Part shown: positions 1,425 to 64,000 of the stretch, piece after piece
Numbering within the stretch: the first letter of the stretch is position 1
How the letters are laid out: each line of letters begins with the position of its first letter
From: Epiperipatus broadwayi
Taxonomy: Eukaryota > Animalia > Onychophora
Direction of reading: 5' to 3'
Assembly (NCBI GenBank): GCA_028023455.1
Contig: JAQFVV010000009.1
Span: 15,438,001 to 15,502,000, forward strand
DNA: 64,000 nucleotides
Program-made: the position numbers and the translations under genes
Notes under the pieces: model-generated
What the model saw: the letters and a program-made list of their open reading frames with translations, nothing else
Database searches by the model: none
What the model was told of the DNA's origin: nothing

Positions 1425-2960
1425 AAATCAAGCAACCATCCAAATAACCATTTCCATTATAATATATAGCAAATTACTACAGTTTAATTTTGTCAAAAAA
1501 TATATTTTTGTTCCTTCAACTGCTTCTTTTAGAATATCTATTATAATTCCATCATTATCTGGAGCTTTTCCTTTCTTCATAAATTTTACTGCATGTCTCA
1601 CTGTTTGATTTAAAATCCTGGGCAATTCAGAAGATATAATAGTTGTAAGAGTTATTTTTCCTTGTTTTTTATTGCTAAATAATTCTTGGTAAAACTTTTT
1701 TACACATTTCATATCATCTCTCTTTTCAATAATATATCCATCTTTTTATCTTATTGCATAAATAAGTTTCCTACCAATATAAAATGTTGTTTTATACTCC
1801 TGAGACTTATTATCTTCTATAGCTTTTTTTGCTATTTCACAATTATACTTTCTTATATCATTATCAACTCTTTTTTGCACCACTTTACAAAATTCAAGAT
1901 ATTCAATGCTTCTTAATGTATCATTTTTATACATTTTCATATTCCTTCTTTTCTTCATAAATTGTCTTGTCTCAATAGAAATTTTACTAGTTATTGCTGC
2001 TTTTTTCTACCAGCTATCTTTGTTGCAGTTTTTAAAAATGTATGTTATCTTCCTATTGATTTCGTTCAAATTTGAATCATGTTTAAAATCTATTAATATA
2101 TGAAAACAATTTGCAAATTCTAATTTAAATTCATTGGAATGTTTCTGGAGATTATGAATATTTGTGAATATTGTTTTTTTTAATCATTTTTGTCTCTCTT
2201 TGTATTAATATATATCTTACATCTCACTAATTGATAATCACTTCCTTTGAATTTATTAAGATTATAATCCTGAAATACATATTTTCTGTTAGTCAAAATA
2301 TAAACCAATTCTGCTGTACCTTCATTTGGATACTTCCATATCCATTTTCATTTAACATTTTTCTCAAAAAAAAAAATTCATAATATAAAGTTTTTCTTTT
2401 TGTGCAAACTCCACAAGTCTATATTCTCTCTCATTTCTATTACCATAACTAAATTTACTTAAAGCACTTTCAATTTCTTACCAATTATAGCATTAATGTC
2501 TCCCATGAAAATTTTACAATGTTTTTTGGTCTGATCAAAAACCTTTTGTACATCCATAAAAATCCTCTAACTTCTTCATCACAATAAGAACTTGTTGGGG
2601 CATAAACCTGAATATCTGCATTTGATATATGCTATTAAATTGAATAAGTAATCTTACCACTTTGTCCAATACACCATTAATTTCCACAATTGTAGTACAG
2701 TATATGTTCATTTTTAAATCAATTATCTCTTCACCTTTTCCCCAACTTCACAGAGTGCAATAATGTCCCATTTAATATTAGGCAGTTCTTACAATTCTTG
2801 CAATCTTCTTTGATTTGAAAATAATCTTCAGTTGTAAGCATCTAAATAAAAGTTACTCATCAAATGGCAGCCTGAGATGCAATCAGGAGATTCTTGGCAC
2901 CTTTTGCCTTTGACCACCAACTACTACTTTAGCTGGTAATTTTGCAGCATCTTGGAATAA
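1425..2960 (-). mobile_element. Degenerate RTE-clade LINE, 5' part (AP endonuclease and linker)
   Basis: Minus-strand translation gives IKWDIIALCEV..KGEEIIDL, IQVYAPTSSY.DEEV and KAPDNDGIIIDILK, with many stops and frameshifts. Homologous to the + strand copy at 49620-52620. Confidence 0.85.
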
Positions 2961-5049
2961 AGGTCATGATTTATTTTTTGTCTAACATGATAGTAAATAT
3001 CTACTAGAAAAACAGATTATTTAACACAAATTCATTCTGCCTTCAAGAAAACTCAACTATCAGGCAAGTGAGAAGCTAGACCATGTTCTTTCTTGCTCTT
3101 AAACTCAGAGGTAAAAAAGCCAATAAACTCAACATGCTGTCTAATGCATGTTGATAAGCAGCCCATTCATGTTTATTGTTTGTATACTATATGAATAATC
3201 ACATAATAATAATAGCTGCAACAACAAGAATGTATAGAGTGGAGATTAGGAATTTGCTTGGTTTGGTTCCTTTAAGAACTCCAAGAGACACCTGATATAT
3301 TGTAAATTTTTGTTACATATAGAAAATTATAAGATATACTGCTGTACTCATGAGCCATAGTTAAGATTAATATTAATGTTCTTATCTTACAATTTTTATG
3401 ATTAAAGTATCATTACTTGTATTCCTAACATAAATAAAACTACAGAAATCTTTAGCTTATGAATCCTCTATCTAGTCTTATACTGAGATAACTCATTCAG
3501 AATACTCAACTTATTTCTGCTCACTAAAATTATATTTGAATTGTTAACTAAAACAAGAGCAGCCATTTATTACAAGTTTGAGCAAACAATGATTATAAGA
3601 AATTTTATTGCATTTTAAATCTCCATCCTCAAATCAGATTCTGGTTTTTCCAATACTGAAACTGGCATGGAATTCAAAGTTGAAAATAATGCAGTTATGT
3701 AACGAGCAATCACATTTAATTCCTTTTTACCATTTAATCTAACAGTATGATATTCAAATCTGCCTAAAATTTTGTGCCCATGTCAACCAGCTTGATTCCT
3801 AAATTTTACTGATAAAGACAAAACAATAAAGAACCTGATAATCACTAACTAATTAAGCTTATATCAGATGATGATAGAGAGCTATTCTTGTTTTGACATA
3901 AATTGGTGAGATGAAGAATTAAGTAATTTGTTCTTATGAACTGTTAACTCTTTGCTTTTTAATCACCAGTCATGAAACTGTCCTAATATTTACGTATAAT
4001 TTTTTGATGATAAAAAAACAAACAAATAATTCAAATTATTTAATATGTTCTTTATCTGGGGAAAAAAAACATCAGTAATCCTTTGATGAGATTCATTGGC
4101 TTAGTGCAGTGAAAGAATCATCTGGAATTTAAATCCATAGATCACTCCAATTCTATTACTTTGGGTGCTCAAACTTCTTATGAATTCCTGAGCTATAAAA
4201 AATATTTGATAATTTAATTAAAGGTTATTCATTTGAAAAAACAAATGACTATAATGAAATTGTCTTCTTTTGGTCATTTTAGGAGGCAATATAATTTATT
4301 AAAAAAAGAGTATACAGATGGGGAGGGGTGAAGAAATACATAATCTGTAAGGAATTTATTTTCTCTATTATCTTTTACTGTTTCTATATGACCATTTGTT
4401 GACACAGCTACAGCATGTAGGTATACAGATTGTTTATCCACTCAAAAGTCATTAATCAAATGAGTGGCCCTTGCTTTCTTACATATTGCCCATGAAGGAC
4501 TTGTCTTTATAATGCAGCTGTAGCTTATAAACTTACTCATGCTCCATTCTATTTTAATTACAGTTTTGATCAATAAATGAAATCTGTATTCCAAAAAAAA
4601 ATTGCATTTGCATTGTGCAAAAATATATACAAGAAAGCAATAACTTTAACAAATACCATTAATCAATCTAACATGTAAAAGAACTAAAGAGGTAATTTTA
4701 TAATTTAAATTTTAATATATATGCGTGTAATAAATAAGTTAATTATAATAAAATTTAAATTGCTTTTATATGTAATTTAAAATTGGAAACATGCAATAAT
4801 AGCATTTCCTTTATCCAGATATGTTATTTTTTTAAATAGTAAAATTGTAATACTATTTATCTTTTTTATTATTATCTATAATATTTTAAAGACTTTATTA
4901 ATTTAAACACACACAAACAAATATTGTTTATCAATTCATTAATTTATTTATTTATAACCTAATCCATCATGAAAATTATTAAAAATTAATTATTCAGTTT
5001 GAAATATTGAATTGTAAATATCAGGAAAAAATATATAAGAAAAAACTGT

Positions 5050-18700: not shown

Positions 18701-21645
18701 TATTAGTAATATTAATAATACTCAATATATATATATTTGCTTGATGTAGTTCATACAGTCAAAACCTTACTTTTGGACAAATAGGTTTCACTTCCTCAGA
18801 TACTATTCATGGGCTTGCTGTTAATAATACCATTAATCCCATATATGTGTGAATACATCCACTCATTTTCCAAAATAATCAAAATAATGGGAAACATGAT
18901 GGCGGGATTTCTCAGATACTAATATTAAATTCATACCTTTTATAATTGTATTTCAGTAGTTATATTTTTGAATGATCATCACTTCTAATTACTAGTAAAC
19001 ATAATAATAATTGATGACTGCATATTTTATTTTGGCAAGTTTAAATTATACTCTAATCCCCAGTAAATCAATATCTTAAACTTTTATCCTGTCCTTTATC
19101 AAATAAAAAATAAAAATTGGATCGACTGTGTGCTTCCTACATTTTTTTATTGCTAGCAAAATCCTTTATTATTTTTCTAACAAATTTCTATATGGCTTCT
19201 ATATTTCAAAGATCTATAGTTCAAACTCAAACTGACCATAAATATATCAGCTAATGATGTCATGTTTTTCTATACTCATATTATAATAGTTTTTATATTA
19301 TAAAACAAATATATATTTCTGTCAGAAAAATACCTTCACACTTTTTGTCAGTTAATTTATTATGTAAACACTTATAATATTTTTTTAGCAGCTCTATTTC
19401 TGTTGGGCTGATGAAAACGTAGACTCCTTGAAGTCACTAATAAAAAGTGAACGATTATACAATCAAATGGAAGCCATAGTTGATGTATATGTTTATACCT
19501 TTAATGCTTTATCATTTATTTAAAAATAATGCTTTAATTCTAAATATTTATACTATAAAAAACCTTATAAAGTAAAATTTTGATGCTTTATCTAATTTTA
19601 TTACTTCACATGATTAACAATTTAATATGAAATGCAGTTTGTTAATATTAATGATATATATAAGATTTATATCATCAGATTCCTTTGCAACCCATGTAAT
19701 ACCGCCATAATTTATTATTAAAAAAGAATAAACCAATTTAAAATGTACCATTGAATAAGATTATTTTCAAATTTTCTAAACATGCAACAATACAATAAGA
19801 TAAATTTTGTTGTTAAAGCACTTTAAAATGTGAGGCTATTTTAAAGACACTCCCAAATTATCTAAACATGCAGCCATGTAATAAAATTAATCCATATTAA
19901 AATATGTCACTGTTTAAATGCCACTCTTTAATGATCTACACATGCACCAAATATACAGTATTGTTCGATTTTATTATTTGAAAAAACTAAAACATTATAA
20001 AATGGAATTACAAAATCACAAATCAATAACTTCTTATTAATTGACACAGGTATTTACATTTCTAAATGATAGAAAGTTTTTTTATATCTATTAACTTTTT
20101 TTAAATGAAAATCATGCAAAAAAAAATAATAAAGAAAAATAGACCTTTAATGTTGAAAAAGTTTGTAGAAATAATTAAAAAGAAAGTATATTACTCGTTA
20201 ATTATAAGACTTATCTAAAATCATGCAACCAATAATTTCACAACCCTTTTTTTTCTTTTCTTCAATCTTTCTAATAGTTAAATTATATTTTTCTTCGCAG
20301 TTTCTTTGCGTGTCTCTGTAAAAATCTTGAACGCCACCCTTTGATTAATGGCTTGCAATTCATTGCTTGGTTTCTATTAAAATATAATACATTGTCATGA
20401 ATAAAAACAGAAAGGGGGAAAATCAGAAAATTGAAAATAGCAAAGAACAAAATAAAATAAAATTTTCTCTGATATACTAGTAAAAATACGCATAGAAAGA
20501 TATGGTTTAATTTAAATTGAAAAAAAAAAAAAAATACAGATTTTAAAAAGATAAAATTTCCATATGAATGTTATTTTTCTTTTCATATTTTATTGTATTT
20601 TTATTAAAAGGATAAAAAAAAAAAAAAACAGAATGAAAAAAAAAACCAGCATAAAAACGTCTAAAAACTTAAGTAATGATTCTCAGTAATAAATGAGAAA
20701 GTTAGACAATCCTGGTGAATATTTTATAAAGTGTCGACTATCCTACCAAATTATTGTTTAAGGTGGTGCCGTATTATACTGACCGTTGATGAAGAGTCAT
20801 ATTTCTTGCTGTTAACATGACGCTGTCTTACGGTATTGAAACAACCTTAAATTTATATGTTTTCAAACTCAACTATAAACTACATTCAATATATAATTAA
20901 ATAAATTTATCATCATTTATTTTACAAAATCTCTAAAGATAAAAATGAACACATGAATTGTTTATCAAGTCGTAAAACACAACAGCCATTAAGAATTCAC
21001 CCAACAAATATGAAAAATGAACTCAAAAAGTTTTTTTTTTTTTAAAAAAAAAAAAGGATAATCAATTTTGAAATCCATAAAAACAAACATATACATATAA
21101 AATTACATATATATTTTTTGCTTTTATATTTAAAAAAAAAAAAGATTGGTAAATATATTTTATAGACTTTTTTTTAATAATAATAAAAAAATAGAAATAT
21201 ATATACTGGCCATTAAATAGATTTTTAAAGGAATATAAAGAAAATTAGATTAAATAAACGAAAAAAAAATTCAGTAAAAAAATGATAGCTTAAAATAAGA
21301 TAGCTTATTCCGGAAACAGCATAAGCAGAATAAATCATATGGTTAGGACATTTCAAAAAAGATAATCGTAGAAAGGTTGCTATTAAAAGAATTATTGTGA
21401 ATAGTATCTGAGAAGAAAAAAAAGTTGCTCTAGACAAAGTTATAGAATAATAAAAATAAAGCTATGAAGAGATTAAATATACGCTTTGAAGATGGATCAA
21501 ACATCTAAATTTCAGATGTGAAAATAATGAACAAGGGCGGAAAACAAAAACTTCTCTCTAATCTTCATTAATTGTTTAATAATTTTGGCTATACAGTATT
21601 TACAATATATCCAAGTTATACAAAAATATAATTAAAATTTTTGTC

Positions 21646-22003
21646 ATAAATCATTGTCAGCTATTACATCCATTAGTCGTAAATGAATCATTCCTTAAGA
21701 TCTTTTTTTTTCTTCTTTTTTAAAACATACTCGTAATTCCTTTATCTCCAAGAATATACTTAATACAATTTCTTGCTTTCTAAATAAATACATTTTAAAA
21801 CCCAATCTATACAATACTTCTATTTTGTTATAAATCATTGTCAACTATTACATCCACTAGTCGTAAATGAATCCTTCTTTAAAATCTTCTTTTTTTAAAA
21901 AAATATATATTCCTAATTCCTTGATTTCCAAGAATATACTTAATACAATTTCTTAGTTTTTAAATGAATACATTTTAAAGCCTAATCTAAACAATATTTC
22001 TAT
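21646..22003. repeat. Two-copy tandem duplication, 184 bp period
   Basis: ATAAATCATTGTCARCTATTACATCCAYTAGTCGTAAATGAATC starts at 21646 and 21830; the copies are diverged by several substitutions. Confidence 0.9.
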
Positions 22004-22123
22004 ATTCTCAATCTCATTTAATATTAGGGTATGAGCACAGACTTTCACATGACCCACCACTCGCCACTCCATCTAATAACACTGTTACACTTAAACACAT
22101 ATATGCTGAAAAGATAAATAATC

Positions 22124-22167
22124 ACCAATATACGTATTTCATGCTAAACCAGCAATCATCAGTTGGT
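22124..22167 (-). ncRNA. Type I hammerhead ribozyme motif, family A copy 1
   Basis: ACCAA-CTGATGA-T-TGCT-GGTTT-AGCA-T-GAA-AT-ACGT-AT-A-TTGGT on the minus strand; predicted cleavage 22129/22128. Confidence 0.88.
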
Positions 22168-22594
22168 CCAGATTATCATCTCTACACATATATACTATAA
22201 GTGCTCAGATATATATTAAGATAGACAATCCTCATACTTTAATGGACAGGCTTCAATCTACTCCACACTCCAACTCTTCAACCGTCCATCCAATTGAAAA
22301 TCTGATGATGGAATGCTCAAAGGCCACCCTGAGGCCGAGATTCTTGTCACACCCATGTTGACCTAAGGTCAATCTGAACCCCACATGTACAGGACATAAT
22401 CCATTAAATACATATGCAAGGATGGGCAGACATCTCTATAATGTAATAACTGAAACACAGGCTTATTTATACCTGTGTCTATATATATGTAATATTAGGG
22501 TATGAGCACAGACTTTCACATGACCCACCACTCTCCACTCCATCTAATAACACTGATACACTTAAACACATATATGTTGAAAAGATAAATAATC

Positions 22595-22638
22595 ACCAAT
22601 ATACGTATTTCATGCTAAACCAGCAATCATCAGTTGGT
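22595..22638 (-). ncRNA. Type I hammerhead ribozyme motif, family A copy 2
   Basis: Identical 44-nt core; predicted cleavage 22600/22599. Confidence 0.88.
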
Positions 22639-23065
22639 CCAGATTATCATCTCTACACATATATACTATAAGTGCTCAGATATATATTAAGATAGACAAT
22701 CCTCATACTTTAATGGACAGGCTTCAATCTACTCCACACTCCAACTCTTCAACCGTCCATCCAATTGAAAATCTGATGATGGAATGCTCAAAGGCCACCC
22801 TGAGGCCGAGATTCTTGTCACACCCATGTTGACCTAAGGTCAATCTGAACCCCACATGTACAGGACATAATCCATTAAATACATATGCAAGGATGGGCAG
22901 ACATCTCTATAATGTAATAACTGAAACACAGGCTTATTTATACCTGTGTCTATATATATGTAATATTAGGGTATGAGCACAGACTTTCACATGACCCACC
23001 ACTCTCCACTCCATCTAATAACACTGATACACTTAAACACATATATGTTGAAAAGATAAATAATC

Positions 23066-23109
23066 ACCAATATACGTATTTCATGCTAAACCAGCAATCA
23101 TCAGTTGGT
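23066..23109 (-). ncRNA. Type I hammerhead ribozyme motif, family A copy 3
   Basis: Identical 44-nt core; predicted cleavage 23071/23070. Confidence 0.88.
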
Positions 23110-23694
23110 CCAGATTATCATCTCTACACATATATACTATAAGTGCTCAGATATATATTAAGATAGACAATCCTCATACTTTAATGGACAGGCTTCAATC
23201 TACTCCACACTCCAACTCTTCAACCGTCCATCCAATTGAAAATCTGATGATGGAATGCTCAAAGGCCACCCTGAGGCCGAGATTCTTGTCACACCCATGT
23301 TGACCTAAGGTCAATCTGAACCCCACATGTACAGGACATAATCCATTAAATACATATGCAAGGATGGGCAGACATCTCTATAATGTAATAACTGAAACAC
23401 AGGCTTATTTATACCTGTGTCTATATATATGTCTGCCCATCCTTGCATATGTATTTAATGGATTATGTCCTGTACATGTGGGGTTCAGATTGACCTTAGG
23501 TCAACATGGGTGTGACAAGAATCTCGGCCTCAGGGTGGCCTTTGAGCATTCCATCATCAGATTTTCAATTGGATGGACGGTTGAAGAGTTGGAGTGTGGA
23601 GTAGTTTGAAGCCTGTCCATTAAAGTATGAGAATTGTCTATCTTAATATATAGCTGAGCACTTAAAGTATATATGTGTAGAGATGATAATCTGG

Positions 23695-23738
23695 ACCAAC
23701 TGATGATTGCTGGTTTAGCATGAAATACGTATATTGGT
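23695..23738 (+). ncRNA. Type I hammerhead ribozyme motif, family A copy 4
   Basis: Stem I ACCAA/TTGGT, core CTGATGA, stem II TGCT/AGCA, GAA, stem III AT-ACGT-AT, cleavage triplet ATA (23733/23734). Stem I extends over 23681-23750 with a TGG bulge. Confidence 0.9.
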
Positions 23739-24167
23739 GATTATTTATCTTTTCAACATATATGTGTTTAAGTGTATCAGTGTTATTAGATGGAGTGGAG
23801 AGTGGTGGGTCATGTGAAAGTCTGTGCTCATACCCTAATATTACATATATATATAGACACAGGTATAAATAAGCCTGTGTTTCAGTTATTACATTATAGA
23901 GATGTCTGCCCATCCTTGCATATGTATTTAATGGATTATGTCCTGTACATGTGGGGTTCAGATTGACCTTAGGTCAACATGGGTGTGACAAGAATCTCGG
24001 CCTCAGGGTGGCCTTTGAGCATTCCATCATCAGATTTTCAATTGGATGGACGGTTGAAGAGTTGGAGTGTGGAGTAGATTGAAGCCTGTCCATTAAAGTA
24101 TGAGGATTGTCTATCTTAATATATATCTGAGCACTTATAGTATATATGTGTAGAGATGATAATCTGG

Positions 24168-24211
24168 ACCAACTGATGATTGCTGGTTTAGCATGAAATA
24201 CGTATATTGGT
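24168..24211 (+). ncRNA. Type I hammerhead ribozyme motif, family A copy 5
   Basis: Identical 44-nt core; predicted cleavage 24206/24207. Confidence 0.88.
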
Positions 24212-24631
24212 GATTATTTATCTTTTCAACATATATGTGTTTAAGTGTATCAGTGTTATTAGATGGAGTGGAGAGTGGTGGGTCATGTGAAAGTCTGTGC
24301 TCATACCCTAATATTACATATATATAGACACAGGTATAAATAAGCCTGTGTTTCAGTTATTACATTATAGAGATGTCTGCCCATCCTTGCATATGTATTT
24401 AATGGATTATGTCCTGTACATGTGGGGTTCAGATTGACCTTAGGTCAACATGGGTGTGACAAGAATCTCGGCCTCAGGGTGGCCTTTGAGCATTCCATCA
24501 TCAGATTTTCAATTGGATGGACGGTTGAAGAGTTGGAGTAGTTTGAAGCCTGTCCATTAAAGTATGAGAATTGTCTATCTTAATATATATCTGAGCACTT
24601 ATAGTATATATGTGTGGAGATGATAATCTGG

Positions 24632-24675
24632 ACCAACTGATGATTGCTGGTTTAGCATGAAATACGTATATTGGT
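24632..24675 (+). ncRNA. Type I hammerhead ribozyme motif, family A copy 6
   Basis: Identical 44-nt core; predicted cleavage 24670/24671. Confidence 0.88.
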
Positions 24676-25479
24676 GATTATTTATCTTTTCAGCATATAT
24701 GTGTTTAAGTGTATCAGTGTTATTAGATGGAGTGGAGAGTGGTGGGTCATGTGAAAGTCTGTGCTCATATCCTGATATTACATATATATAGACACAGGTA
24801 TAAATAAGCCTGTGTTTCAGTTAATCTCATTTAGTTAATGAATGGGGGGGGTTTGAATTTGCATTTCAAATGCTTCCAAACCTTGTTCTTAATTTTCTAC
24901 TTCAACACTATATTTTAAAACAAACATTTACTAAATCTTTTCCTAATTCTGTCTTCAGTGATTGTCAAAATAATCTTGTATACTTGCTATAATTCAAATT
25001 AGTTATTACAATTCTCATTTTCTTCATCACTTTTTAAAAGATTAATTTAATTTTAAGATTTTATGCCTAATTTTTATTTTCTACTAAATTTTCATTCTAA
25101 AATTAAATTCATTAATTGACAGGATTTTCTGATTGATGGTTATAATAATAACCACTAATAACCAATAAAACTACATATGCATATAACACACTTATTTATT
25201 TAATCAGTTGTTTATTAGAAAATATCTTTGCATGAGAGAACTTATTATACATGATTACAATGTTTTTTCTGATTTGAGATAGTATTTTAGATATTTAGAA
25301 AGTAGTTTAAACAACAATGTAGAAAATGTAAATCATTATAAAATCTGAAAGTATAAATAATACGAATTTTTAAAAATTTTAAATGTCCTTAATCTAAGAC
25401 AATGTGGTAACTTTGATATTGCTTAGTATATATAAAGACTAGATATATTTACAAGTAATATAGCATTTCAACGGATGTT

Positions 25480-27250
25480 GCTCTGAAAAATTGCCATCTA
25501 TTGCAAAATTTGAAAAAAACATTTTTTTAAAAACCCAGACAACATGTTGGACAAATCATGTTGCAGTTGAGCCCACATTTCCAACAAAATGAATAAAATA
25601 GTCATTACTAGTATAATAGAAAGAAAAAAAAAAATTACCACTTAAAAAACTAAGAATGCCTCATAATATCCATGAGATTCTCAAGACGACAAGTACTGCA
25701 TAATACATTTTAATAAAATTTTATTTCTTCTATTTCAATTCTGCTAATAAGTGTAAACTTGAGAAATTAATAAATGCAAGATGACAGTAATTAATAAATA
25801 CCAATTCATTGCTGTGCTGTCCATATCCCAGATTAGTTTCTAGGTTATGGCATTTGTCAATAAGAAATTTTGGATCTGAATCTATTGAACCTGGATTTCA
25901 ATGCAATTTTCCACCTGCAACCAGCCTGAAACTCAAAAATATTTTAATGTTAAGAATCTAACCCATCTAGCCTGTGTAAGATACCAGTTTAGCATTTATA
26001 TATTTTTGGTATCCTCAGTTTTTTTAATAAATGTACTTCCCTATATTTCTTGATCAGAATTGTTACAAAACCAATAATAAATCACATGACTCAGGTCATT
26101 CAATACTTCTAAGAAGAAATCTATTTCTCCTATTCTAATTCTGCTACCTGCTATAAGCTTAATTTTGCATTTCTGCAAATTAGCTGTAAAGATAAAATTA
26201 TAATATTTTGCTCTGTATTAGCATGTTCTTTTCAAAAATGACAATGCTTTTTCATCATATCTATTTTAAATTAGTTTCAATATGTTCAAAATATACAAAT
26301 ACTCATTTATCCAGTATTATTTATTAATCTATAACTTGATCCCAAATCCTATCCCCACACATTTTAACTTGCTTCTGAATTGTTGTAAAATTATCTATAT
26401 TGTACATGCAATTATGAAAAGTACACAGAAAAGAAACAAATTGTGATTTTGAAGTAGATATTATGTTAGTCACTGTTCTAAAATTGCTTCACCACTATAA
26501 ATCTAGTCAGGAGGCACAAATTCATTAGTTATGAATGCAAATTATTTTATCTAACAAAATCAATCCCATAAAAAGAATGCCACGATTATAACTTCCTCAT
26601 TCTTGTTCCTCCCTAGAGAAATATTATATCTTTTATAAAAAAAAAAAATATGCTAGTAAAATTTATAATTGATTTGTTGTTATTGTAAACATTATCTTAA
26701 AGAACTCATTCTTTATCAATAATAAACTATTCATCTCAATACATATCATTCTTCCAAATTCTATTCCCAAGCCATCATGTAAATGGAACTTTTTTCTCCA
26801 TATAATATCTTTCAAAAATACTATTACATAAATATTTGCTTTTCTAAGTAAAATAAATCTTACTTTTTCTTTCTTCTCCCTATTTCTTATCAATTTCTAT
26901 TCTTTGACATAATACTTCTATATTCTTCTAAGGTTTACCATCACTGTATCAAGAGATATGCTGATCCATATTTTTAGATCATATAGAAAAGTTGAAACAA
27001 ATATAGTTCAATAAAATCTGCTGAGTATTGAATCTGGTATATGAGAAGGCTCCCATAAAAAAGAATTTGAATTTCCTATACACTGTATCCAATATTCAGA
27101 AATTGAATGATCAATTCATTCCATTAGTATATCCTCCATGCACTTTGCACAAGACAATTGTAAAATTACCTAATTCTTTTGGAACCCTCCATGCAAACAT
27201 GTACTTACAAGTAAATATGGTGGGGTGAATTTAAAATTGTTAATATCGAA
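25480..27250 (-). mobile_element. Highly degenerate LINE relic (endonuclease to RT)
   Basis: Minus-strand GAGTTTCAGGCTGGTTGCAGG (EFQAGCR, resembling E.Q.GFR) near 25915-25935, plus a weak GDFN-like remnant near 27045. Boundaries are approximate. Confidence 0.4.
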
Positions 27251-28200
27251 CATCATCTTGAAAATACTCACAAATCAGTTCTATATTTTATAAATTAAGA
27301 ATTCTTCAACTTATCTATAACAGTCCTCTAGCCCATTAAATTAAAAAATAAAAAGATAATTTCATAATTATTTTAATATTTGTATATTATTGAAAATAAC
27401 AAACATTCGCTTTCAACTATTATCGATATATTTATTTGTATCAGCAAATGAAATAAATTATTTGGTTTAAAATAATTAATGATATAGAATTTATTCAACA
27501 ATACTGCCAATGATAATAAGAAATTAACGGTTATTAAGACTGACAAATTGTCTTGATATTTTATCAGCATAGACAGTAAGTAATGTTTACGAAATGACAA
27601 TTTAAAATGAAGATAATTGTTTATTAACATTTGAATTAGCACTTAACAGATCGTTTAATTACTTATTTCAAAATATTTTAATAAGAAGAACCTAGAAATA
27701 ATTAACTTAATTTATTAATAATAAACTAATTTATTAATTATTGAATTTATTAATAGTTAATCATGTTAGTAATTAGAAGAAAAAAAAGGAATTATCACTT
27801 TACAAACATGCATAAGTTTAACGTTTAAATATATAAAATATTTTTGTTCGAATGCAAATTTTATTGGGCAGTAGCAAAATATCTTGAATAAAACAGTCGA
27901 TAAATTATACATATCTAACTACATAATCTGGTAAATTATTTTTGAATATCCAATACGTAATTACAGTATGAATTGCTAAATGAATATATAATCTTATTCC
28001 AACCAGCCAACTTTGTTTTTTAAGTTGTTGTTTTTATTGAATTTGGCTTTGACAAAAAAAAAAACTCTTATCATATCTTATATATATGGAATGAAAGTCC
28101 TACATGATTTGATGCAATAGTAGAATGTCAGCCTTTGGAGCTACAGTACAGTTATGCCACTTTTGATACTCAAAATATGATTCTCAAGCAGTAAATCATT

Positions 28201-28315
28201 TAATTATACAGTAACAAAATAAAGATATGGGTTGAGATGATGATGGTTACTGAATGATAATTATACAGTAACAAAATAAAGATATGGGTTGAGATGATGA
28301 TGGTTACTGAATGAT
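28201..28315. repeat. Two-copy tandem duplication, 57 bp period
   Basis: TAATTATACAGTAACAAAATAAAGATATGGGTTGAGATGATGATGGTTACTGAATGA starts at 28201 and 28258. Confidence 0.92.
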
Positions 28316-28674
28316 GGACTGTGTTACCAAAAAAGAAGGATATATATGTAAAATAAATGTGCAGCATAAAATAAATAAAACAATTGGTTTGAGTATCACT
28401 ATTTATCTGAATAGCTATTTTATACTAAATACAGGTTATAAAAGGTTGTTATATAAACCAAGATATCCTAATCACTATATTTTCAGTAACAAGTATTAAA
28501 TATTTCAACATTATTCCGTTGTAATTATCAAAACATTCCTTGACAATCATCTCTATTATGTGTATGGATTTAGAAGTGACTCATAGTATTATCTTTAAGT
28601 CATGATGATGATGATGATAAGGATTATAAATGAATGCCATCTATATATATAATTTTCAGAGAGAACTACATATC

Positions 28675-28696
28675 CACACACACACACACACACACA
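28675..28696. repeat. (CA)n microsatellite
   Basis: Uninterrupted CA run. Confidence 0.95.
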
Positions 28697-29199
28697 AATA
28701 ATCTGTGATCATTTCTGTATACAGAGCTTCACATAAAACGAGATTCAAGACATATGAGTAATACATATGAACAAGATTACAGACAGATTAATTTAAATAT
28801 ATATAATAAATTTATTGAATAAATAAAATAATTAAAATTAAATTATTAAATAAGTTATTGGCAGATTACATGTTGTGTTACTGTGCTAATTTAATAAATA
28901 TATCATTTAATCAATGTTGACACTTTCACATAAATGTAAAATAATTTTTAAATATATATATCTGTGGAGAAAAAGACAATACAGTGAAAAGTTAATCTTG
29001 TTTCTTGATCAATTTTTAGATAATTAACTTTAAATAATTAAGTATTTAATGACATATCTAACAAAGTTTTACCTGCTTAAATTAAAATTTCAAGTTCCAA
29101 GTCATTTTAGTAAAAATAAAATTATTTGCACAAATGTATGATTATAGACATGTCACTATTTACCCCTATAATTTATATAATCAGCCAGGGCTACCATGT

Positions 29200-29760
29200 G
29201 TGGGAATGCAAAAGTGCTTCATCAATTGCACCACCAAATTGCAGCGATAATTAATAAAATTTATTTGTAAATGAAAATGCTTAGGTTTATGAATCATTTA
29301 AAGGTTAGAAATGTTCTAATTCATAAATGCTTAGATTTACGAATCACTCCATTGTTAGAAACATATTCTGATTGTAAATATTTTTTATTTAAATATAAAA
29401 GGATTACTTTTTTACTTCAATTGCTTAAAATATATATTAAATATGATATACTCTATCCGTGAATAGCATTGAACAGATGAGTACCATTTTGCCATGGTAA
29501 GTAAAATTTATATGTAAATGAAAATGTTTAGATTTCTGAATCATTCTATTATTAGAAATATGTTTTGATTGCAAATATTTTTTATTTAAATATAAGATAA
29601 TTTATTTTTTATTCAGACTTCTGACAATTCTTTGAAATATACTAAATATTATATTGTCTATCATTGAGCTAAATCAAACAGACTTGGCACCATTTCGCTG
29701 CAATAATTAACTACATTTATATGTAAATAATTAGATTTCTGAATTATCTTTATTTAAATA
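29200..29760. repeat. Degenerate tandem repeat (about 3 diverged copies)
   Basis: Recurrent TTTAT.TGTAAATGAAAATG.TTAG.TTT.TGAATCA (~29262, ~29508, ~29717) and CACCA.TT..C.GC.ATAATTAA motifs. Confidence 0.6.
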
Positions 29761-31849
29761 TCTTAATTTATATGAAAAATAACACATTACTATTAATAAT
29801 TTATTTTAAAATAAATATATTTAAACATTAGTTAATAATAATTATGCAAAATAAGTAATTTTCTTTATCACTCATATTTTATAAATTTTTTTATCATGTG
29901 ATCATAATAGATTATCAGAATCCTAAACATGGGTTCAAGGAAGTCTTATTTTTGTTTTTAAAACAGATATTCACTTTTTTTTCATTTTAATATTAATTTT
30001 TTTTATTTTTAATACTGATATAATTTTTTTTACATGTTTTACTAATCTACTTTTATTGGAATTGTAGTGGAATTTGTTATTCATAATTGATACATAAAAT
30101 TATGCAAATACATAAAGATCCAAATCCAAGGAAAACAGAATTAGTAAAAAACAATTTTTTAAAAAAAGATATTATTGAGCACATATTAACACGGTATTAT
30201 TGTTTATATGTCCATCTGAACTATACAACTTCACTTTTAATTGCTCAAATAGAAAAATGCCTATTAAATTCTTTATCTATTCTAGTGAATACCAGTCTCT
30301 TTTAACAACCAATTGTATAACAGTTTTCTTTCATTATTATTGTCCTTTTATAAAATGTAATCTTTGTTTAGCCTAATAAAAATTTGTTTAAAGTAAAACA
30401 ACCAATTGTTTGATTATTTTTTTTGACTTATTATAACCTATCATTGAACAAAAGAAAATGCAAGCAATGGTAAATAAATAATATGTGAAAATTTCTCTTA
30501 AATATAAATCCTTAAAATCCTTAGATACTTGATTATATAGAGTGACTAAGTTTTTAAACTGAAATAACAAGCATACAAAAAATTATTCTATTATAAAGAT
30601 TCCCAAGGAAATAAAGTAAAAAACAAGAGTTATTTTGAATTAATTAATATGTTGGTTAGAGTCAACCTAATTAAAACTGATTGTTATTTATCACATTGCA
30701 GCCACTAAAATCAAGAGACTTAATATATAAATAAAAAGGTAAAAATATAAATTATTATAATTTTTTAATATTCTATTTTTAATATTCATTTTGTTTTAAA
30801 ATAATAAATTTTATTTCAGAGGAGGGCAAGAGGAGATCTTTTTCACATGATAAAAAGCATTTAGATATCTAAAAAAAATAATCTTACTTGCAAATATAGA
30901 TATATTAAAATTATCCAAATTGATACTTATAATATATAAATTACTTATTTATTATAAATATGATTTTGAATCAATATTTGAGAAAACAAATAAAATACAT
31001 ATAATGCAATATATATATATTAGTTTCTTCATTTTATTGCAAATCTGTTAATAGGATTATGCTAAATGTGTTTTTTTTTTTGGCAAATTCTGATTCAATA
31101 GAGTTAACTTCACATTAATATAACTGAAAAATCTGAATTACAGCATAATCAGAGCTTTTACAATTGTATTACTTTGCACATGATATTCATTGTAGAGCTT
31201 ACAAATTATTGAGTTTTGGCAACAAAAGAAAAGTAGTTTCATGTAGCATATGATAAAATGTTTTATTTTTTGAATTTCACAAAAGACATCATACAGGCCT
31301 GGGGTCTTGATAAATGTGAGGTCTTGTGCCATCCCAATACTCAGACCAGCACTATTCATGAGACTAGGGGTGCTGAAATTTAGCTTGTACAAAAGCATCT
31401 CTTACCCATGGGGCAGCCCTGTAATCAGCACATCTACAATATTGATTATTCATAATGATCATCTTAATTTAATATATTTGAGATGGCAATCAAAAGTTTT
31501 AGCTTTCTGAAATTGATTTAAAATAGAATTAATTAAGCAATTTTCTATATTTACAATTCTTTAAAAAGAAAAAATGTATACCCACCCCCAAAAAGTTTTT
31601 TAATTCAATATTGTTTTGGACATCTTGGATAGTTATCTAAATTTTAAAATAAGATCAATTTCCCTTTTCAATTCTCTCATTCTTTTATCTTAAAATCCAT
31701 TAATGCTTTAAAATAAATTTCTAGTTTTTGTATCCTTATAAATATGATTCTTCTCCTTGTTTTTCCAGCAATACTTTTACACTTGATTTAATCTTTCTGC
31801 TAAAAAGTTTCAATATTATACATCATATGTACATATTTCATATTGTTCT

Positions 31850-34220: not shown

Positions 34221-34335
34221 AATCTTAACTTTTTTTTTCATACGTCAAAGCGTTGACCGGGAAGCGAATCCGGGCCAGCTGCTTGGAAGGCAGCTATGCT
34301 ATCCACAAGGCCACCAACGCTTGACAAATCTTAAC
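34221..34335 (-). mobile_element. tRNA-Gly(TCC)-derived short SINE or retropseudogene with poly(A) and TSD
   Basis: 34250-34320 minus strand GCGTTGGTGGCCTTGTGGATAGCATAGCTGCCTTCCAAGCAGCTGGCCCGGATTCGCTTCCCGGTCAACGC closely resembles eukaryotic tRNA-Gly(TCC), with D- and T-arm mismatches. A-tail at 34230-34238; AAATCTTAAC on both sides. Confidence 0.85.
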
Positions 34336-36232: not shown

Positions 36233-36441
36233 ATAAGTTAGGTGATAAACTTTTGCTACCAATGAATAAACAGTTGGTGATTAATAGAATGATTTTTACA
36301 GATAAGGTTATCTGTGAATAATAATAAATTGAACTATAAGTTAGGTGATAAACTTTTGCTACCAATGAATAAACAGTTGGTGATTAATAGAATGATTTTT
36401 ACAGATAAGGTTATCTGTGAATAATAATAAATTGAACTATA
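36233..36441. repeat. Perfect two-copy tandem duplication, 103 bp period
   Basis: ATAAGTTAGGTGATAAACTTTTGCTACC...AATTGAACT starts at 36233 and 36336. Confidence 0.95.
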
Positions 36442-37243
36442 AAACTTGGTCAGTGCTACAATTGTTTAATGTCCAAATAAGAATATCTGCTATTTTATTA
36501 AATAAAATGTTGGCTCATCAAAGGTAAGTATCCAATACAAACAATAATCTCTTTTTGTACCTCTTTCTATCATTCCATCATTTTTATTTCATTAAACTTG
36601 TAAGTTGGTTTAGGATGTAATCATTATGAGACTCATTCCACTTGTCATTTTTCAGCACAATGTGATTGCTAAATTACATATTTGTGTCACTATATTTCCA
36701 TCTTTTAATCACATGCAGAACAAATCTTATATAAGTACATAAAATTATGTAGTCTTCAGAAATGAAAAAATCATGCAGACAGGTTTTACATGAAACAAGT
36801 CTCATTCAGAAAATATCTGTACATTTGAACAATTATATTTAGAAAATCCCTCTGTTCCCCAAATGATCTAGAAAAAGTAGGCTAAAAATATGGTTTCACA
36901 ATATTTATGCTAGGTTACAGTGGCTGGTAGAATGTTCATTTAAATAGCAGAAACATCTGTAATAAAGTAATAAATACTCTGGGTAGCAGAGCAGAAAGTG
37001 TATCCCAAATTCTGAAGTATATTTATCAAAATATAACAGTAATGATTAGATTGTATAACGATAACATGATTAATAATGTGTAACAGTAAACGCCGTTATA
37101 TTAATTTAAAAGTAAAATATTTTTTTTTCTTAAGTTCGTAAATAAAAGCTAAAAAAATTAAAGAGTTGTTAAACGTGTATACGTATACATATTCGCACAG
37201 ATGCAAAAGTTTAAAAAATATTTCTTTTTTAAATAAAAAAAAA

Positions 37244-40173: not shown

Positions 40174-40365
40174 AGACTAGTTTCTAGGTGTAATATTCTC
40201 AAATCCAAGGTTCCTTACTGATGAAAGCCACAAGCTAGAAAATAGTCTGGGGATATTGGATGAGTAGTCATTAGGTAGGGATTTTAAGCATAAACCTTCC
40301 TGCATCCATTGATTATGAAGGCTTGCACTAGGTGGTTCTAGAGTTTGGTCTTTTTAATAAATCCC
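39826..40365. mobile_element. Family B fold-back, locus 2, with probable 12-bp TSD
   Basis: TTAATAAATCCC at 39826-39837 and 40354-40365; the arms join at CTAG microhomology 40184-40187. Confidence 0.8.
40212..40253 (+). ncRNA. Type I hammerhead ribozyme motif, family B
   Basis: TCCTTA-CTGATGA-A-AGC-CACAA-GCT-A-GAAA-ATAG-TC-TGGGGA. Confidence 0.75.
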
Positions 40366-60350: not shown

Positions 60351-61250
60351 ACCAGATACATGAATTTTTATACTAAACACACACTCAAACTTCCGGGGTA
60401 ATTTAATTAAAAAAGAATCATGTGTTCAATATAATTCATGACATTTATTTAATTAAAACAACTGACTCTTTTCCATTTTAATTAAACAGCTGAAATAAAA
60501 ATTTAGCACATCTGCTTGTGCAGTTTCATTATATTTTAGACCACATGATGACGCTAGTGTCTTTACAAATACAAAAACAGCTGCAAAACACTGGCAATTT
60601 AGGAAATGGCAATATTTAAGTGGAAAAAAAAGGGATTCATTTAAAATGAAAAATTAAACCATAAAGTATAATTTATATCTATATTTAATTTATACCTTTT
60701 AAAAAAGGTGATGGAGACATTGGTTACAAAAAAAAAATTTTTTTAAATATTTTCTGAAAAAAATGTTTTTTAATCCAGTGGATTTGAACTGGAATCAGAT
60801 TCCATTAAAATAATTTGAAAAAAAAAACACAATTATTTCATAAAGATTCAAAAAAAAAAGAAAAAAAAAGCACAAGCTATATAATGTGTGTATATGGTTA
60901 TATATTAGTAATGGTTAAAACAGGGATAGTGGAAAACTAGCTATCTCTGGGTTTCCTTTTGTTTTTTGCCAACTAATAAAATAAACATGCCTGGATGAAT
61001 TTACCGAATTGATGAAAAAGTCCTAAATATATTTGTAAAATTTCAGCAATCCAAAAAAGTTCCACATTTCACCTAGATTTGAAATCCATATTATGAATAT
61101 GGCACACTACGAAATGTATTATATTGTAAATATATATTTACACAGACAAAACTCTCCATACAGTAGTATCACTCAGTACAAGCCAGAGTAATTAATGGAT
61201 GCGAGAAGGCTTGTGCATAAAATCACTATCTAGTATCTACTCATTCAATA

Positions 61251-61292
61251 TTCCCAGACTAGTTTCTAGTCTATGATTTTCGTCAGTGAGGA
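61251..61292 (-). ncRNA. Type I hammerhead motif, family B (CTGACGA core, disrupted stem II)
   Basis: TCCTCA-CTGACGA-AAATCATAGACTA-GAAA-CTAG-TC-TGGGAA. Confidence 0.55.
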
Positions 61293-61695
61293 GCCTTGGA
61301 TTTGAGCGTACTGTTCCTAGATATTAGGATCTAATGCAACCTTTCCAGCAGGCACCTTTTATCTCTACTTCACTACAAAACTATGAGAATAAAATTGAAA
61401 ACACAATTAACATTTTTTTGAAAACGCAATATGCTCATTAGCTTATAAATTCAGTATCCATACATTTTGATGTCTTTGGTTCTTTAATAACCATAGCCAC
61501 CACTATCCTATTAGGCAGAATTAGTATTAAACCAGTAAACATCACATGATCACCATTTCTTATGCTTGCTCATAACTGTTATTAAAATAGGCAAAACTCT
61601 CCATATAATAGTGCCACTCAGTGCAAGTCAGAGCAATCAATGGATGCCAGAAGGCTTGTGCATAAAATCCCTATCTAGTGTCTACTCATCCAATA

Positions 61696-61737
61696 TCCCC
61701 AGACTAGTTTCTAGCTTATGACTTTCATCAGTGAGGA
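61696..61737 (-). ncRNA. Type I hammerhead motif, family B, intact
   Basis: TCCTCA-CTGATGA-A-AGT-CATAA-GCT-A-GAAA-CTAG-TC-TGGGGA; outer stem ATCCAA/TTGGAT. Confidence 0.82.
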
Positions 61738-62143
61738 GCCTTGGATCTAAGAGCACTGCACCTAAAGCTTAGGATCTAATGCAACCCTCCAGCAGCTATT
61801 TTTTGTCTCTACTTAACTACAAAACTATAAGAACAATACTGAACACAATATTTTCAATCCAAGCTCATTAGCTTATATAGTCATATAGGTCTGAACTAAA
61901 TTCAGTAGCCATACATTTTGGTGTCTTTGTTTCATTAATAACCAAAGCTACCACTATCCTATAAGACAGGATTGGTATTAAACCACTAAACATCACATGA
62001 TTACCATTTGTTATGTTTGCTTATAACTTATTAAAACAGGCAAACTCTCCAAACAGCCATGCCACTCAGTGCAAGCCAGAGCAATCAATGGATGTCAGAA
62101 GGCTTGTGCATAAAATCCCTATCTAGTGCCTACTCATCCAATA

Positions 62144-62185
62144 TCCCCAGACTAGTTTCTAGCTCGTGGCTTTCATCAGTGAGGA
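62144..62185 (-). ncRNA. Type I hammerhead motif, family B, intact core
   Basis: TCCTCA-CTGATGA-A-AGC-CACGA-GCT-A-GAAA-CTAG-TC-TGGGGA. Confidence 0.82.
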
Positions 62186-62310
62186 GTCTTGAAAATATTG
62201 TTTTTTCAATTTTATTCTCATAGTTTCGTAGTTATGTAGACATAAAAGATGGCTTCTGGAAAGTTGCATTAGATCTTAAGATCTAGGTGCAGTGCTCTCA
62301 GATCCAAGGC

Positions 62311-62352
62311 TATTCACTGACAAAAGCCACAAACTAGAAACTAGTCTGGGGA
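62311..62352 (+). ncRNA. Type I hammerhead motif, family B, decayed
   Basis: TATTCA-CTGACAA-AAGCCACAAACTA-GAAA-CTAG-TC-TGGGGA; G8>A and a stem II mismatch. Confidence 0.5.
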
Positions 62353-62762
62353 TATTGGATGAGTAGGCACTAGATAGGGATTTTATGCACAAGCCTTCTG
62401 GAATCCATTGATTACTCTGGCTTGCATTGAGTGGCACTACTGTATGGAGAGTTTTGCCTATTTTAATAACAGTTATGAGCAAGCATAAGAAATAGAGATC
62501 GTGTGATGTTTAGTGGTATAATACTAATCCTACCTAATAGAATAGTGGTGGCTATGGTTATTAAAATACCAAAGATGCCAAAATGTGTGGGAACTCAACT
62601 GACTTTAGAACATATGACTATATAAGCTCATGAGCTTGGATTGAAAATATTATTGTGTTTTTTTTATTCTCATAGTTTTGTAGTTAAGAAGAGATAAAAG
62701 GTGGCTGCTGGAGGGTTGCATTAGATCCTAAGATCTAGGTGCAGTGCTCTCAGATCCAAGGC

Positions 62763-62804
62763 TCCTCACTGATGAAAGCCTCAAGCTAGAAACAAGTCTG
62801 GGGA
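62763..62804 (+). ncRNA. Type I hammerhead motif, family B
   Basis: TCCTCA-CTGATGA-A-AGC-CTCAA-GCT-A-GAAA-CAAG-TC-TGGGGA; stem III loop is CAAG instead of CTAG. Confidence 0.78.
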
Positions 62805-64000
62805 TATTGGATGAGTAGGCACTAGATAGGAATTTTATGCACAAGCCTTCTGGCATCCATTGATTACTCTGGCTTGCACTGAGTGGTACTACTGTATGGA
62901 AAGTTTTGTCTGTTTTAATAACAGTTATGAGCAAGCATAAGAAATGTTTGTGTGATGTTCAATGGTTTAATATAATATATACACATTATTGTATCATGAT
63001 ATCTTTCAATCAATACACACATATATTGCAATGGATTGGAGGGATCAAGAATGTATAGATGATAATGAATAATAAATATAATTATAAAATTTTTCATAGT
63101 AAAATTATCTAAGCATGTCAATTTTCATGGATTAATTGTGCATTAGGAAATACTAACAAGTTTAAACTATTAAAAATCAATAAGAGACTATATGAAATCT
63201 TAGTTTTAATAAGTTATATAAAAAATTAATATATAAAAATTAACAGAGATCATGGTACAATAAAATATATTTACTTTTGAAAAAAAAGTCTAACCCTTAA
63301 TTATTACACAAATTACTATGACTTTATTAAATATAATGTTTGTTTAATATGCTAATTATTATTTAAGACTAATCAAAGTTGTATGGAACAGCTAATATTT
63401 GTCACTCCTATTTGATCCCATCATGAAAAGAGCTATATGATAATTTTTTCATAAATTTATATTCATTCACACTTTCTATTTTATATCTATCATTAATACT
63501 GGGAAATCATTCATCCATCCATTTCACTTTGTATTCATCTTTAATATTGAATTTACTTTAATTTTTTTTTTTCATTTCATATGTAACACTGGTTAATCAT
63601 TCATCCATTTTATTTTATATTCATACCAAATATTAGATATTAATTTGTCCAATAAACATATTTCAAAATTATATTCTTTATTTGTCTGAGTATATACTGA
63701 TAAACTTGCAAACTCTATGCAATTATATATTATAATGTCATTACTTTTTTAAAATGAAAAAAATAGTTCTCAATTTATTAATAGATGATTGATTTCATTC
63801 AACAAATATCATTTCATCAGAGAGGGTAGTAAGAATTTTGTAATCCCCATAATTAAATAAATATATACAAATAATAATATAAAACTAAACAAATAAACAA
63901 ATATTTTAAATTAGCATTTTTTTCCCTTAATGAAATTACTAAATTTCTTTTTAAGATTTCATATAGCCTTTCAATTTGGAGTCAAATTTAAAATAAAGAC

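Follow-up and report, generated by a model that had tools for sequence, protein, structure and literature searches.

Penelope-like elements (PLEs) insert as partial tandems with an inverted, 5′-truncated copy adjacent to them and a tail of 30–40 bp at a single end (Craig et al. 2021, PMC8557442). The purified protein of one lizard PLE cuts and extends both DNA strands, favours AT-rich DNA targets and begins to reverse-transcribe from two neighbouring internal sites in an AC-rich stem-loop about 85–92 nt past the hammerhead cut (Frangieh et al. 2024, PMC11167929). The tail of PLE insertions is the stretch between both start sites, and hammerhead cleavage was dispensable for insertion in vitro, so that the substrate is unprocessed RNA (PMC11167929). 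A dimer-type design is common to most metazoan type I hammerheads and to the minimal hammerheads of PLEs (PMC4209133), and animal retrozymes have been proposed to be PLE derivatives (PMC7229834; bioRxiv 10.64898/2026.07.22.740005). Here, a fold-back insertion of 471-bp units, each with a hammerhead motif, is compared with these systems. It lies at 22010–24833 of a 64,000-nucleotide stretch of the genome of the onychophoran Epiperipatus broadwayi (contig JAQFVV010000009.1); this whole stretch is called the window, and positions are counted from its first letter.

The insertion is very probably a recent copy of an abundant, non-coding, retrozyme-like element of 471 nt, which is non-autonomous and is mobilised by the reverse transcriptase (RT) and GIY-YIG endonuclease of a PLE; the identity of the enzyme and the order of events are what we infer. 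Two arms of opposite orientation meet directly at its centre, and one target-site duplication (TSD) of 10–11 bp brackets the entire fold-back. In the analysis with Tandem Repeats Finder (TRF), the antisense half at 22019–23432 comprised 3.0 copies of a 471-bp unit with 99% matches, and the half in opposite orientation at 23422–24823 comprised 3.0 copies of about 473 bp with 97% matches. A repeat search of the window showed that the inverted arms have up to 693 nt with 100% complementarity. With unit position 1 set as the first base 3′ of the predicted hammerhead cut, the parts of the insertion are as follows.

22010–22020, no strand: left TSD copy, AATCTCATTTA, with the last 1–2 nt shared with the element end (microhomology)
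22019–23432, minus strand: antisense arm, 3.0 units of 471 bp
22453–22480, 22924–22951 and 23395–23422, minus strand: AC-rich stem-loop with a 10-bp stem, unit positions 120–147, located by repeat search
23429–23432, no strand: fold-back centre, a direct join of the arms via the 4-nt microhomology ATGT without spacer
23433–24823, plus strand: sense arm, about 3 units (473, 464 and a partial one)
23855–23882, 24326–24353 and 24790–24817, plus strand: AC-rich stem-loop copies of the sense arm, the last one in the tail
24778–24823, plus strand: tail of 46 nt, unit positions 111–156, at the right end of the insertion only
24823/24824–24833, no strand: right TSD copy, (A)ATCTCATTTA, of which the 10 bp ATCTCATTTA are 24824–24833

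The antisense arm has its outer end at unit position ~110–113 (the A end, without tail) and its inner, 5′-truncated end at 110, and the outermost left unit is without the AC-rich stem-loop. Its inner 1.3 kb show no differences from the family consensus. The outer end of the sense arm lies at unit position 153–156 (the B end); this arm is a mosaic of family polymorphisms, and its third unit has a 9-nt deletion. At the central join, the left arm runs up to unit position 110 and the right arm starts from ~167–171. The subfamily variant 23G occurs in both outermost partial units (22016–22128 and 24671–24823), as against 23A in every inner unit, and most private differences likewise fall within the outer units. 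The longest open reading frame (ORF) of the insertion has 83 amino acids and none recurs in a coding-like fashion; in the absence of an RT plus GIY-YIG ORF, the element can only be a non-autonomous dependant. The GC content of the 2-kb bin 22001–24000, which holds most of the insert, is 37.6%, as compared with 23–25% in most nearby bins. Three tandem 471-bp monomers followed by about three inverted ones had already been described in a first-pass annotation of the window, and both TRF and the repeat search bore this out. The 10–11 bp flanking direct repeat (AATCTCATTTA and (A)ATCTCATTTA) and the lack of a sizeable ORF were confirmed as well.

The 471-bp unit belongs to a large family. Its 34-nt hammerhead core occurs 67,669 times at two or fewer mismatches in the 5.6-Gb genome, with no occurrence for the reversed control; with 471 bp per unit, the family would make up 0.6% of the assembly (about 32 Mb), in roughly 25,000–30,000 insertions. 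From a survey of 40 elements mapped at independent loci, 34 were fold-backs, all with the antisense arm first, then the sense arm, and with the 3′ ends outward; the opposite polarity was found in none of the same-age elements of this survey. A partial tandem with an adjacent inverted 5′-truncated copy was present in the window and at 33 other loci in the same polarity. The TSDs of the family, recorded at about 30 other insertions, are locus-specific and 11–17 bp long with a mode of 13–14. The fold-back is the standard product of the family (34/40, one polarity), not an assembly artefact or a local rearrangement.

The outer ends of the fold-backs are fixed. In 31–32 of the 34, one arm ends at unit position ~104–120 (A) and the other one at ~152–169 (B), so that, counted downstream from the hammerhead cut, A lies at about 110 nt and B at about 156 nt, with 46 nt between them. 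Both ends follow the motif TATTA/CAT (the slash marks the end) and lie 9–10 nt from either side of the stem-loop at unit positions 120–147, the 10-bp stem of which reads AGACACAGGU-N8-GCCUGUGUUU. The inner arm ends are variable, as 5′ truncation would give, yet enriched at positions 85–170 (27/64, about 12 expected). An apparent enrichment of arm 5′ ends at position 1, i.e. at the hammerhead cut, was a query-edge artefact of BLAST; by exact mapping, 11/64 arm ends fell within ±30 nt of the cut, with 8 expected. The hammerhead cut does not define the ends of inserted copies. The earlier account of the ends had missed the two fixed arm-end sites, which lie 110 and 156 nt past the ribozyme and not at its cut.

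These end rules match the published hallmarks of PLE insertions, and the unit can thus be read as a non-autonomous carrier of a PLE module, which consists of the hammerhead, a spacer of about 100 nt and the start-site stem-loop and which places the unit among the animal non-LTR retrozymes (LTR, long terminal repeat). More than 10,000 GIY-YIG candidates were counted in the genome. One coding PLE copy (L054:876–3029) is itself a fold-back with remnants of the endonuclease ORF in both arms and with the polarity of the 471-bp family. Its parts, in the coordinates of that locus, are given in the following line.

934–1945 and 2007–3021: arms of the L054 PLE, with a 12-bp TSD TTGAGCAATTAA and a 46-nt tail at 888–933 on the left arm only

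PLE 3′ regions at two further loci (L056:2186–2317 and L061, reverse strand) both end 96 nt after the predicted hammerhead cut. The hammerhead of these two PLE regions is of the minimal kind (UUGAAAA ... GAAACGUU), with the core pair U3-A8 and the palindrome AACGUU.

In the proposed course of events, a PLE protein with RT and GIY-YIG endonuclease would make a staggered break in AT-rich DNA, the stagger giving the 10–11 bp TSD, and both 3′ ends would prime reverse transcription on the unit RNA. Each complementary DNA (cDNA) would begin internally beside the AC-rich stem-loop, presumed to be the initiation hairpin of reverse transcription, either at site A or at site B, and would extend 5′-ward over several units and straight across the hammerhead site. 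The two cDNA ends might then be joined centrally by microhomology. If the two 3′ ends of such a break both act as primers, the order of antisense arm, then sense arm, is precisely what is predicted, and the product would have the 46-nt stretch between the start sites at one end only. The first-pass annotation had proposed a young, non-autonomous, retrotransposed element of retrozyme or Penelope type, and this is supported by the dispersal of the family, the locus-specific TSDs, the 5′-truncated arms and the Penelope-specific ends.

Within the insertion, a motif scan identified six identical hammerhead cores, CTGATGA-ttgctggtttagcat-GAAA-tacgtata. Their CTGATGA starts at 22162, 22633 and 23104 for the minus strand and at 23700, 24173 and 24637 for the plus strand. 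The sole variation among the six hammerheads is one distal helix I base in the last copy. The domains, each of them with helix I, core, helix II and a palindromic helix III, are listed here.

22107–22181, minus strand: hammerhead domain 1, predicted cut 22129/22128
22578–22652, minus strand: hammerhead domain 2, predicted cut 22600/22599
23049–23123, minus strand: hammerhead domain 3, predicted cut 23071/23070
23681–23755, plus strand: hammerhead domain 4, CTGATGA at 23700–23706, GAAA at 23722–23725, predicted cut after A23733
24154–24228, plus strand: hammerhead domain 5, predicted cut after 24206
24618–24692, plus strand: hammerhead domain 6 (a single distal base of helix I differs), predicted cut after 24670

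All six units contain the motif accaa-CUGAUGA-u-ugcu-gguuu-agca-u-GAAA-uacgua-U-A/uuggu, in which the slash marks the predicted cut; the cut at 23733/23734 that had been predicted before agrees with this parse. Every conserved base of the type I core (C3 U4 G5 A6 N7 G8 A9 ... G12 A13 A14 A15.1-U16.1 H17) is present in 6/6 units, and three helices surround the core, with helix I open. Helix I has about 17 bp in total, namely 5 bp (ACCAA/UUGGU), a 3-nt bulge and about 12 bp distal to it. Helix II has 4 bp (UGCU/AGCA) over a U-U mismatch, and helix III only 2–3 bp inside the 8-nt palindrome AUACGUAU, which fits the dimer model (PMC4209133). The motif is of the minimal type I kind and is expected to act as a dimer or with the help of a protein, and presumably it processes multimeric transcripts; its ribozyme activity is what we infer. 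Cofolding favoured the dimer by about 12 kcal/mol. Among 175 aligned units from other loci (CpG sites excluded; copies not independent), variability was 0.92% in the hammerhead domain and 1.78% in the rest of the unit (p=3e-8), which hints at constraint. The claim of 471-bp monomers with an identical hammerhead each held for the shared core; the units are not alike throughout, given the mosaic right arm, its deletion and the variant 23G. A relative of unit positions 323–464 was seen at another locus (L059, reverse strand, 300–442). It is 66% identical and has A-U at the helix II base, not U-U. With its changed A6 (core CUGUUGA), it probably represents a sister family by a copy that is dead.

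The insertion is recent, as judged by its perfect TSD, its kept CpGs, the consensus-identical inner 1.3 kb and the few private differences. The helix III CpG is kept in 6/6 window hammerheads and was lost in about 22% of sampled units, and only about 4 differences in the 2.8 kb are truly private. Read evidence was taken from Logan assembled contigs of four runs, i.e. X1 and X5 (same species label), X6 (other species label) and X8. In run X1, 23729 G>A accounts for roughly half of the read depth at this position. Related samples and species hold the family, and other samples are without the flanks. For run X8, one 108-nt variant contig in 22143–22248 had a depth of about 2,970 and made up 65% of the local depth, as compared with 4–10% in X1, X5 and X6. 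This dominance is a weak hint at expression from one source, the kind of run X8 having been assigned to RNA by guess only.

Several observations weigh against a PLE-mobilised element with a working hammerhead. The U-U at 10.1–11.1 is not a Watson-Crick pair. No hammerhead family of Rfam matched at the gathering threshold or at E≤10, whether the whole window, a 3.8-kb region or a 121-nt stretch was searched. This comparison had been suggested in the first-pass annotation and turned out negative, which would be expected of minimal variants with a tiny helix III (PMC4209133). A complete type I hammerhead in every monomer had been claimed, and this rests on manual motif analysis. The minimum-energy dimer was an alternative hairpin over helix II and not the textbook double hammerhead. 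An empty allele or empty-site joint was not found in the Logan contigs, nor a haplotig in the assembly, where the left flank occurs only once. An autonomous PLE that has sequence in common with the unit was not found either, with only chance-level matches in 12 PLE loci. Furthermore, start sites were used alike on both strands by the PLE in vitro (PMC11167929), and the strict pairing of one A with one B end is not explained by this.

The U-U and the missing Rfam match are also the starting point of an alternative we regard as rather unlikely, according to which the family spreads solely through the PLE start-site module, and its hammerhead-like motif would be a relic without activity. It would agree with the poor cleavage of minimal PLE hammerheads in vitro (PMC4209133), with PLE insertion being independent of cleavage (PMC11167929) and with inserted copies never ending at the cut site. 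However, 67,669 copies have kept an intact core, no part of the unit varies less than the hammerhead domain, and the palindromic helix III fits the dimer model. In addition, the axolotl retrozyme hammerhead HHR_Amex2 has a U-U likewise at its helix II base (PMC7229834).

Two other routes of insertion were considered very improbable. In foldback (FB) elements, tandem subrepeats make up long inverted arms, and TSDs lie on either side. A DNA-level transposon of this kind, or a satellite array with an inversion, would need no RNA step, and the missing poly(A) tail is in keeping with it. Against this speak the TSDs, which vary between 11 and 17 bp and are not of fixed length, the combination of variable inner truncation points with fixed outer ends, and the one-sided tail, which makes the termini asymmetric and not symmetric terminal inverted repeats. 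Moreover, the identical layout is seen in the PLE copy that codes for RT and endonuclease, and the hammerhead and start-site stem-loop of the unit are arranged as in PLE RNA (PMC11167929).

The second route is insertion of a multimeric transcript by the machinery of an L1-like long interspersed nuclear element (LINE), with the inversion made by twin priming. Twin priming, too, leaves a single TSD around two segments, the first inverted and the second in sense orientation. Poly(A) or an A-rich 3′ end is missing, however, and both arms hold the 3′-terminal region of the unit, where twin priming would invert an upstream segment. Two fixed ends 46 nt apart about a stem-loop are likewise not in line with LINE activity, and fold-backs are the rule in this family (34/40) and not a minority.

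That the palindrome is an assembly artefact, in which a chimeric or fold-back read joined two tandem arrays, is hardly credible: PLE-type structures do trouble assemblies (PMC8557442), the centre is unbridged by Logan contigs and contig cover at the right junction reaches only 26 nt into the element, but a single TSD encloses the fold-back as a whole, the source reads cover both flanks at about 25x as single-copy sequence, with the left one unique in the assembly, and about 33 further loci on different contigs show the same polarity and end rule with TSDs of their own.

The target of the insertion is a 180-bp repeat (21639–22010 and, in the right flank, 24834–25010). Two of its copies are 82% identical, and a third one, about 60% diverged, is interrupted by the insertion. 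As a stand-in for the empty site, the paralogue, with about 60% identity, cannot tell one from two TSD copies.

As for the template, the 471/1 junction is intact in all multi-unit arms, and the copied RNA was thus uncleaved or re-ligated at the ribozyme site. Units of one insertion diverge by 2.0%, within arms as much as between them, and those of different loci by 3.2%. At sites with at least three units, 9 sample-private variants were shared by every unit of the two arms, 4 by some units only, and 91 were confined to a single unit, the last being presumably later mutations. Among lineage variants, 364G has 16 occurrences genome-wide at about 10 loci, the pair 29G+31A has 362 and the subfamily variant 23G 3,823 copies. 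This pattern fits a template in which one unit sequence is repeated, be it that a circular monomer was copied by the rolling-circle mode or that the source array was homogeneous. A copy from a multimeric or circular RNA had been suggested before, and it fits both the read-through of the intact cut site and the lineage variants, which usually occur in all units of both arms. The window insertion is an exception to the reiteration pattern; its outer 23G, inner 23A and mosaic right arm suggest template switching or a heterogeneous multimer. A higher mutation load of the outermost units was confined to the window and was not a family-wide property (0.47% vs 0.38%, p=0.28).

It is conceivable, if somewhat doubtful, that double priming is coupled and asymmetric, with A used for one strand and B for the other (31–32/34), and that it is combined with rolling-circle reverse transcription of circular monomer RNA. 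If true, the family would show from in vivo products that the Penelope integration complex is obligately dimeric and acts on ribozyme-derived RNA circles.

Since the element belongs to a described class, the locus is no discovery in kind. Its value lies in clean, natural evidence. A young family of 68,000 units shows in a genome the features that a 2024 study described in vitro for a single lizard PLE (extension of both strands, two internal start sites and a tail between them), and the anatomy of the insertions, beyond mere co-occurrence, ties an animal retrozyme-like family to the PLE machinery. The strict A/B pairing and the ends that never coincide with the ribozyme cut constrain models of PLE integration and of the role of the hammerhead. 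Of the new points, the most useful one is that single insertions regularly pair the two start sites.

Some other features of the window should be mentioned. Canonical CTGANGA-core matches in the 64 kb were confined to the 471-bp family and a second repeat family. The latter is found at 40218 (plus strand) and at 61135–62975 (61731 and 62179 on the minus strand, 62769 on the plus strand) as tandem and inverted units of about 445–452 bp. Its motif is CUGAUGA-aagcNcNagcua-GAAA-cuagu-C/ugggga, with the palindromic helix III ACUAGU and A-A at the helix II base; the design is that of the 471-bp family and the helix sequences are different. The sole match at Rfam gathering level in the window was a tRNA-like sequence at 34249–34320 (minus strand, 34.6 bits), either a possible gene or the possible head of a short interspersed nuclear element derived from tRNA. 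Rfam microRNA matches at 23310–23496 were merely the centre of the palindrome. Two perfect two-copy tandem duplications (100% matches) lie at 28201–28315 (57 bp) and 36233–36442 (103 bp).

Among the known systems, plant LTR retrozymes (PMC4918200) are likewise non-autonomous, hammerhead-bearing and RNA-mediated. They depend on a Gypsy partner and have type III hammerheads, LTRs, a primer-binding site, a polypurine tract and TSDs of 4 bp, all of which are absent here. The minimal, dimer-type hammerheads of PLEs, newt, Schistosoma and Dolichopoda pDo500 (PMC4209133, PMC2837043) share the canonical core, the very short palindromic helix III, the expected double hammerhead and tandem units of about 0.3–0.5 kb, whereas the 471-bp unit has an unusually long helix I and the U-U at 10.1–11.1. 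A sequence relationship to these families was not seen; for pDo500, no comparison at sequence level was made.

Animal non-LTR retrozymes (PMC7229834; 10.64898/2026.07.22.740005) resemble the family in their non-coding, low-GC tandem units with a type I hammerhead each, in TSDs longer than 4 bp, in very high copy numbers and in the proposed dependence on PLEs. Their reported units have 170–400 nt, so that 471 nt is slightly outside this range. The fold-back with a one-sided tail and two fixed ends is described in neither report; by text search, the term 'inverted' is absent from PMC7229834 and occurs only in a reference title in 10.64898/2026.07.22.740005.

With PLEs (PMC8557442, PMC11167929), the family has in common the partial tandems with an inverted 5′-truncated copy, the one-end tail, the extension of both strands, the AT-rich targets and the copying of uncleaved RNA, together with an AC-rich stem-loop about 100 nt past the hammerhead cut, at which RT has two internal start sites. 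Unlike PLEs, the 471-bp element is without an RT/endonuclease ORF, and its tail has 46 nt as compared with 30–40 nt. In addition, each start site is used once per insertion here (31–32/34), in contrast to the PLE in vitro, for which the two strands did not differ.

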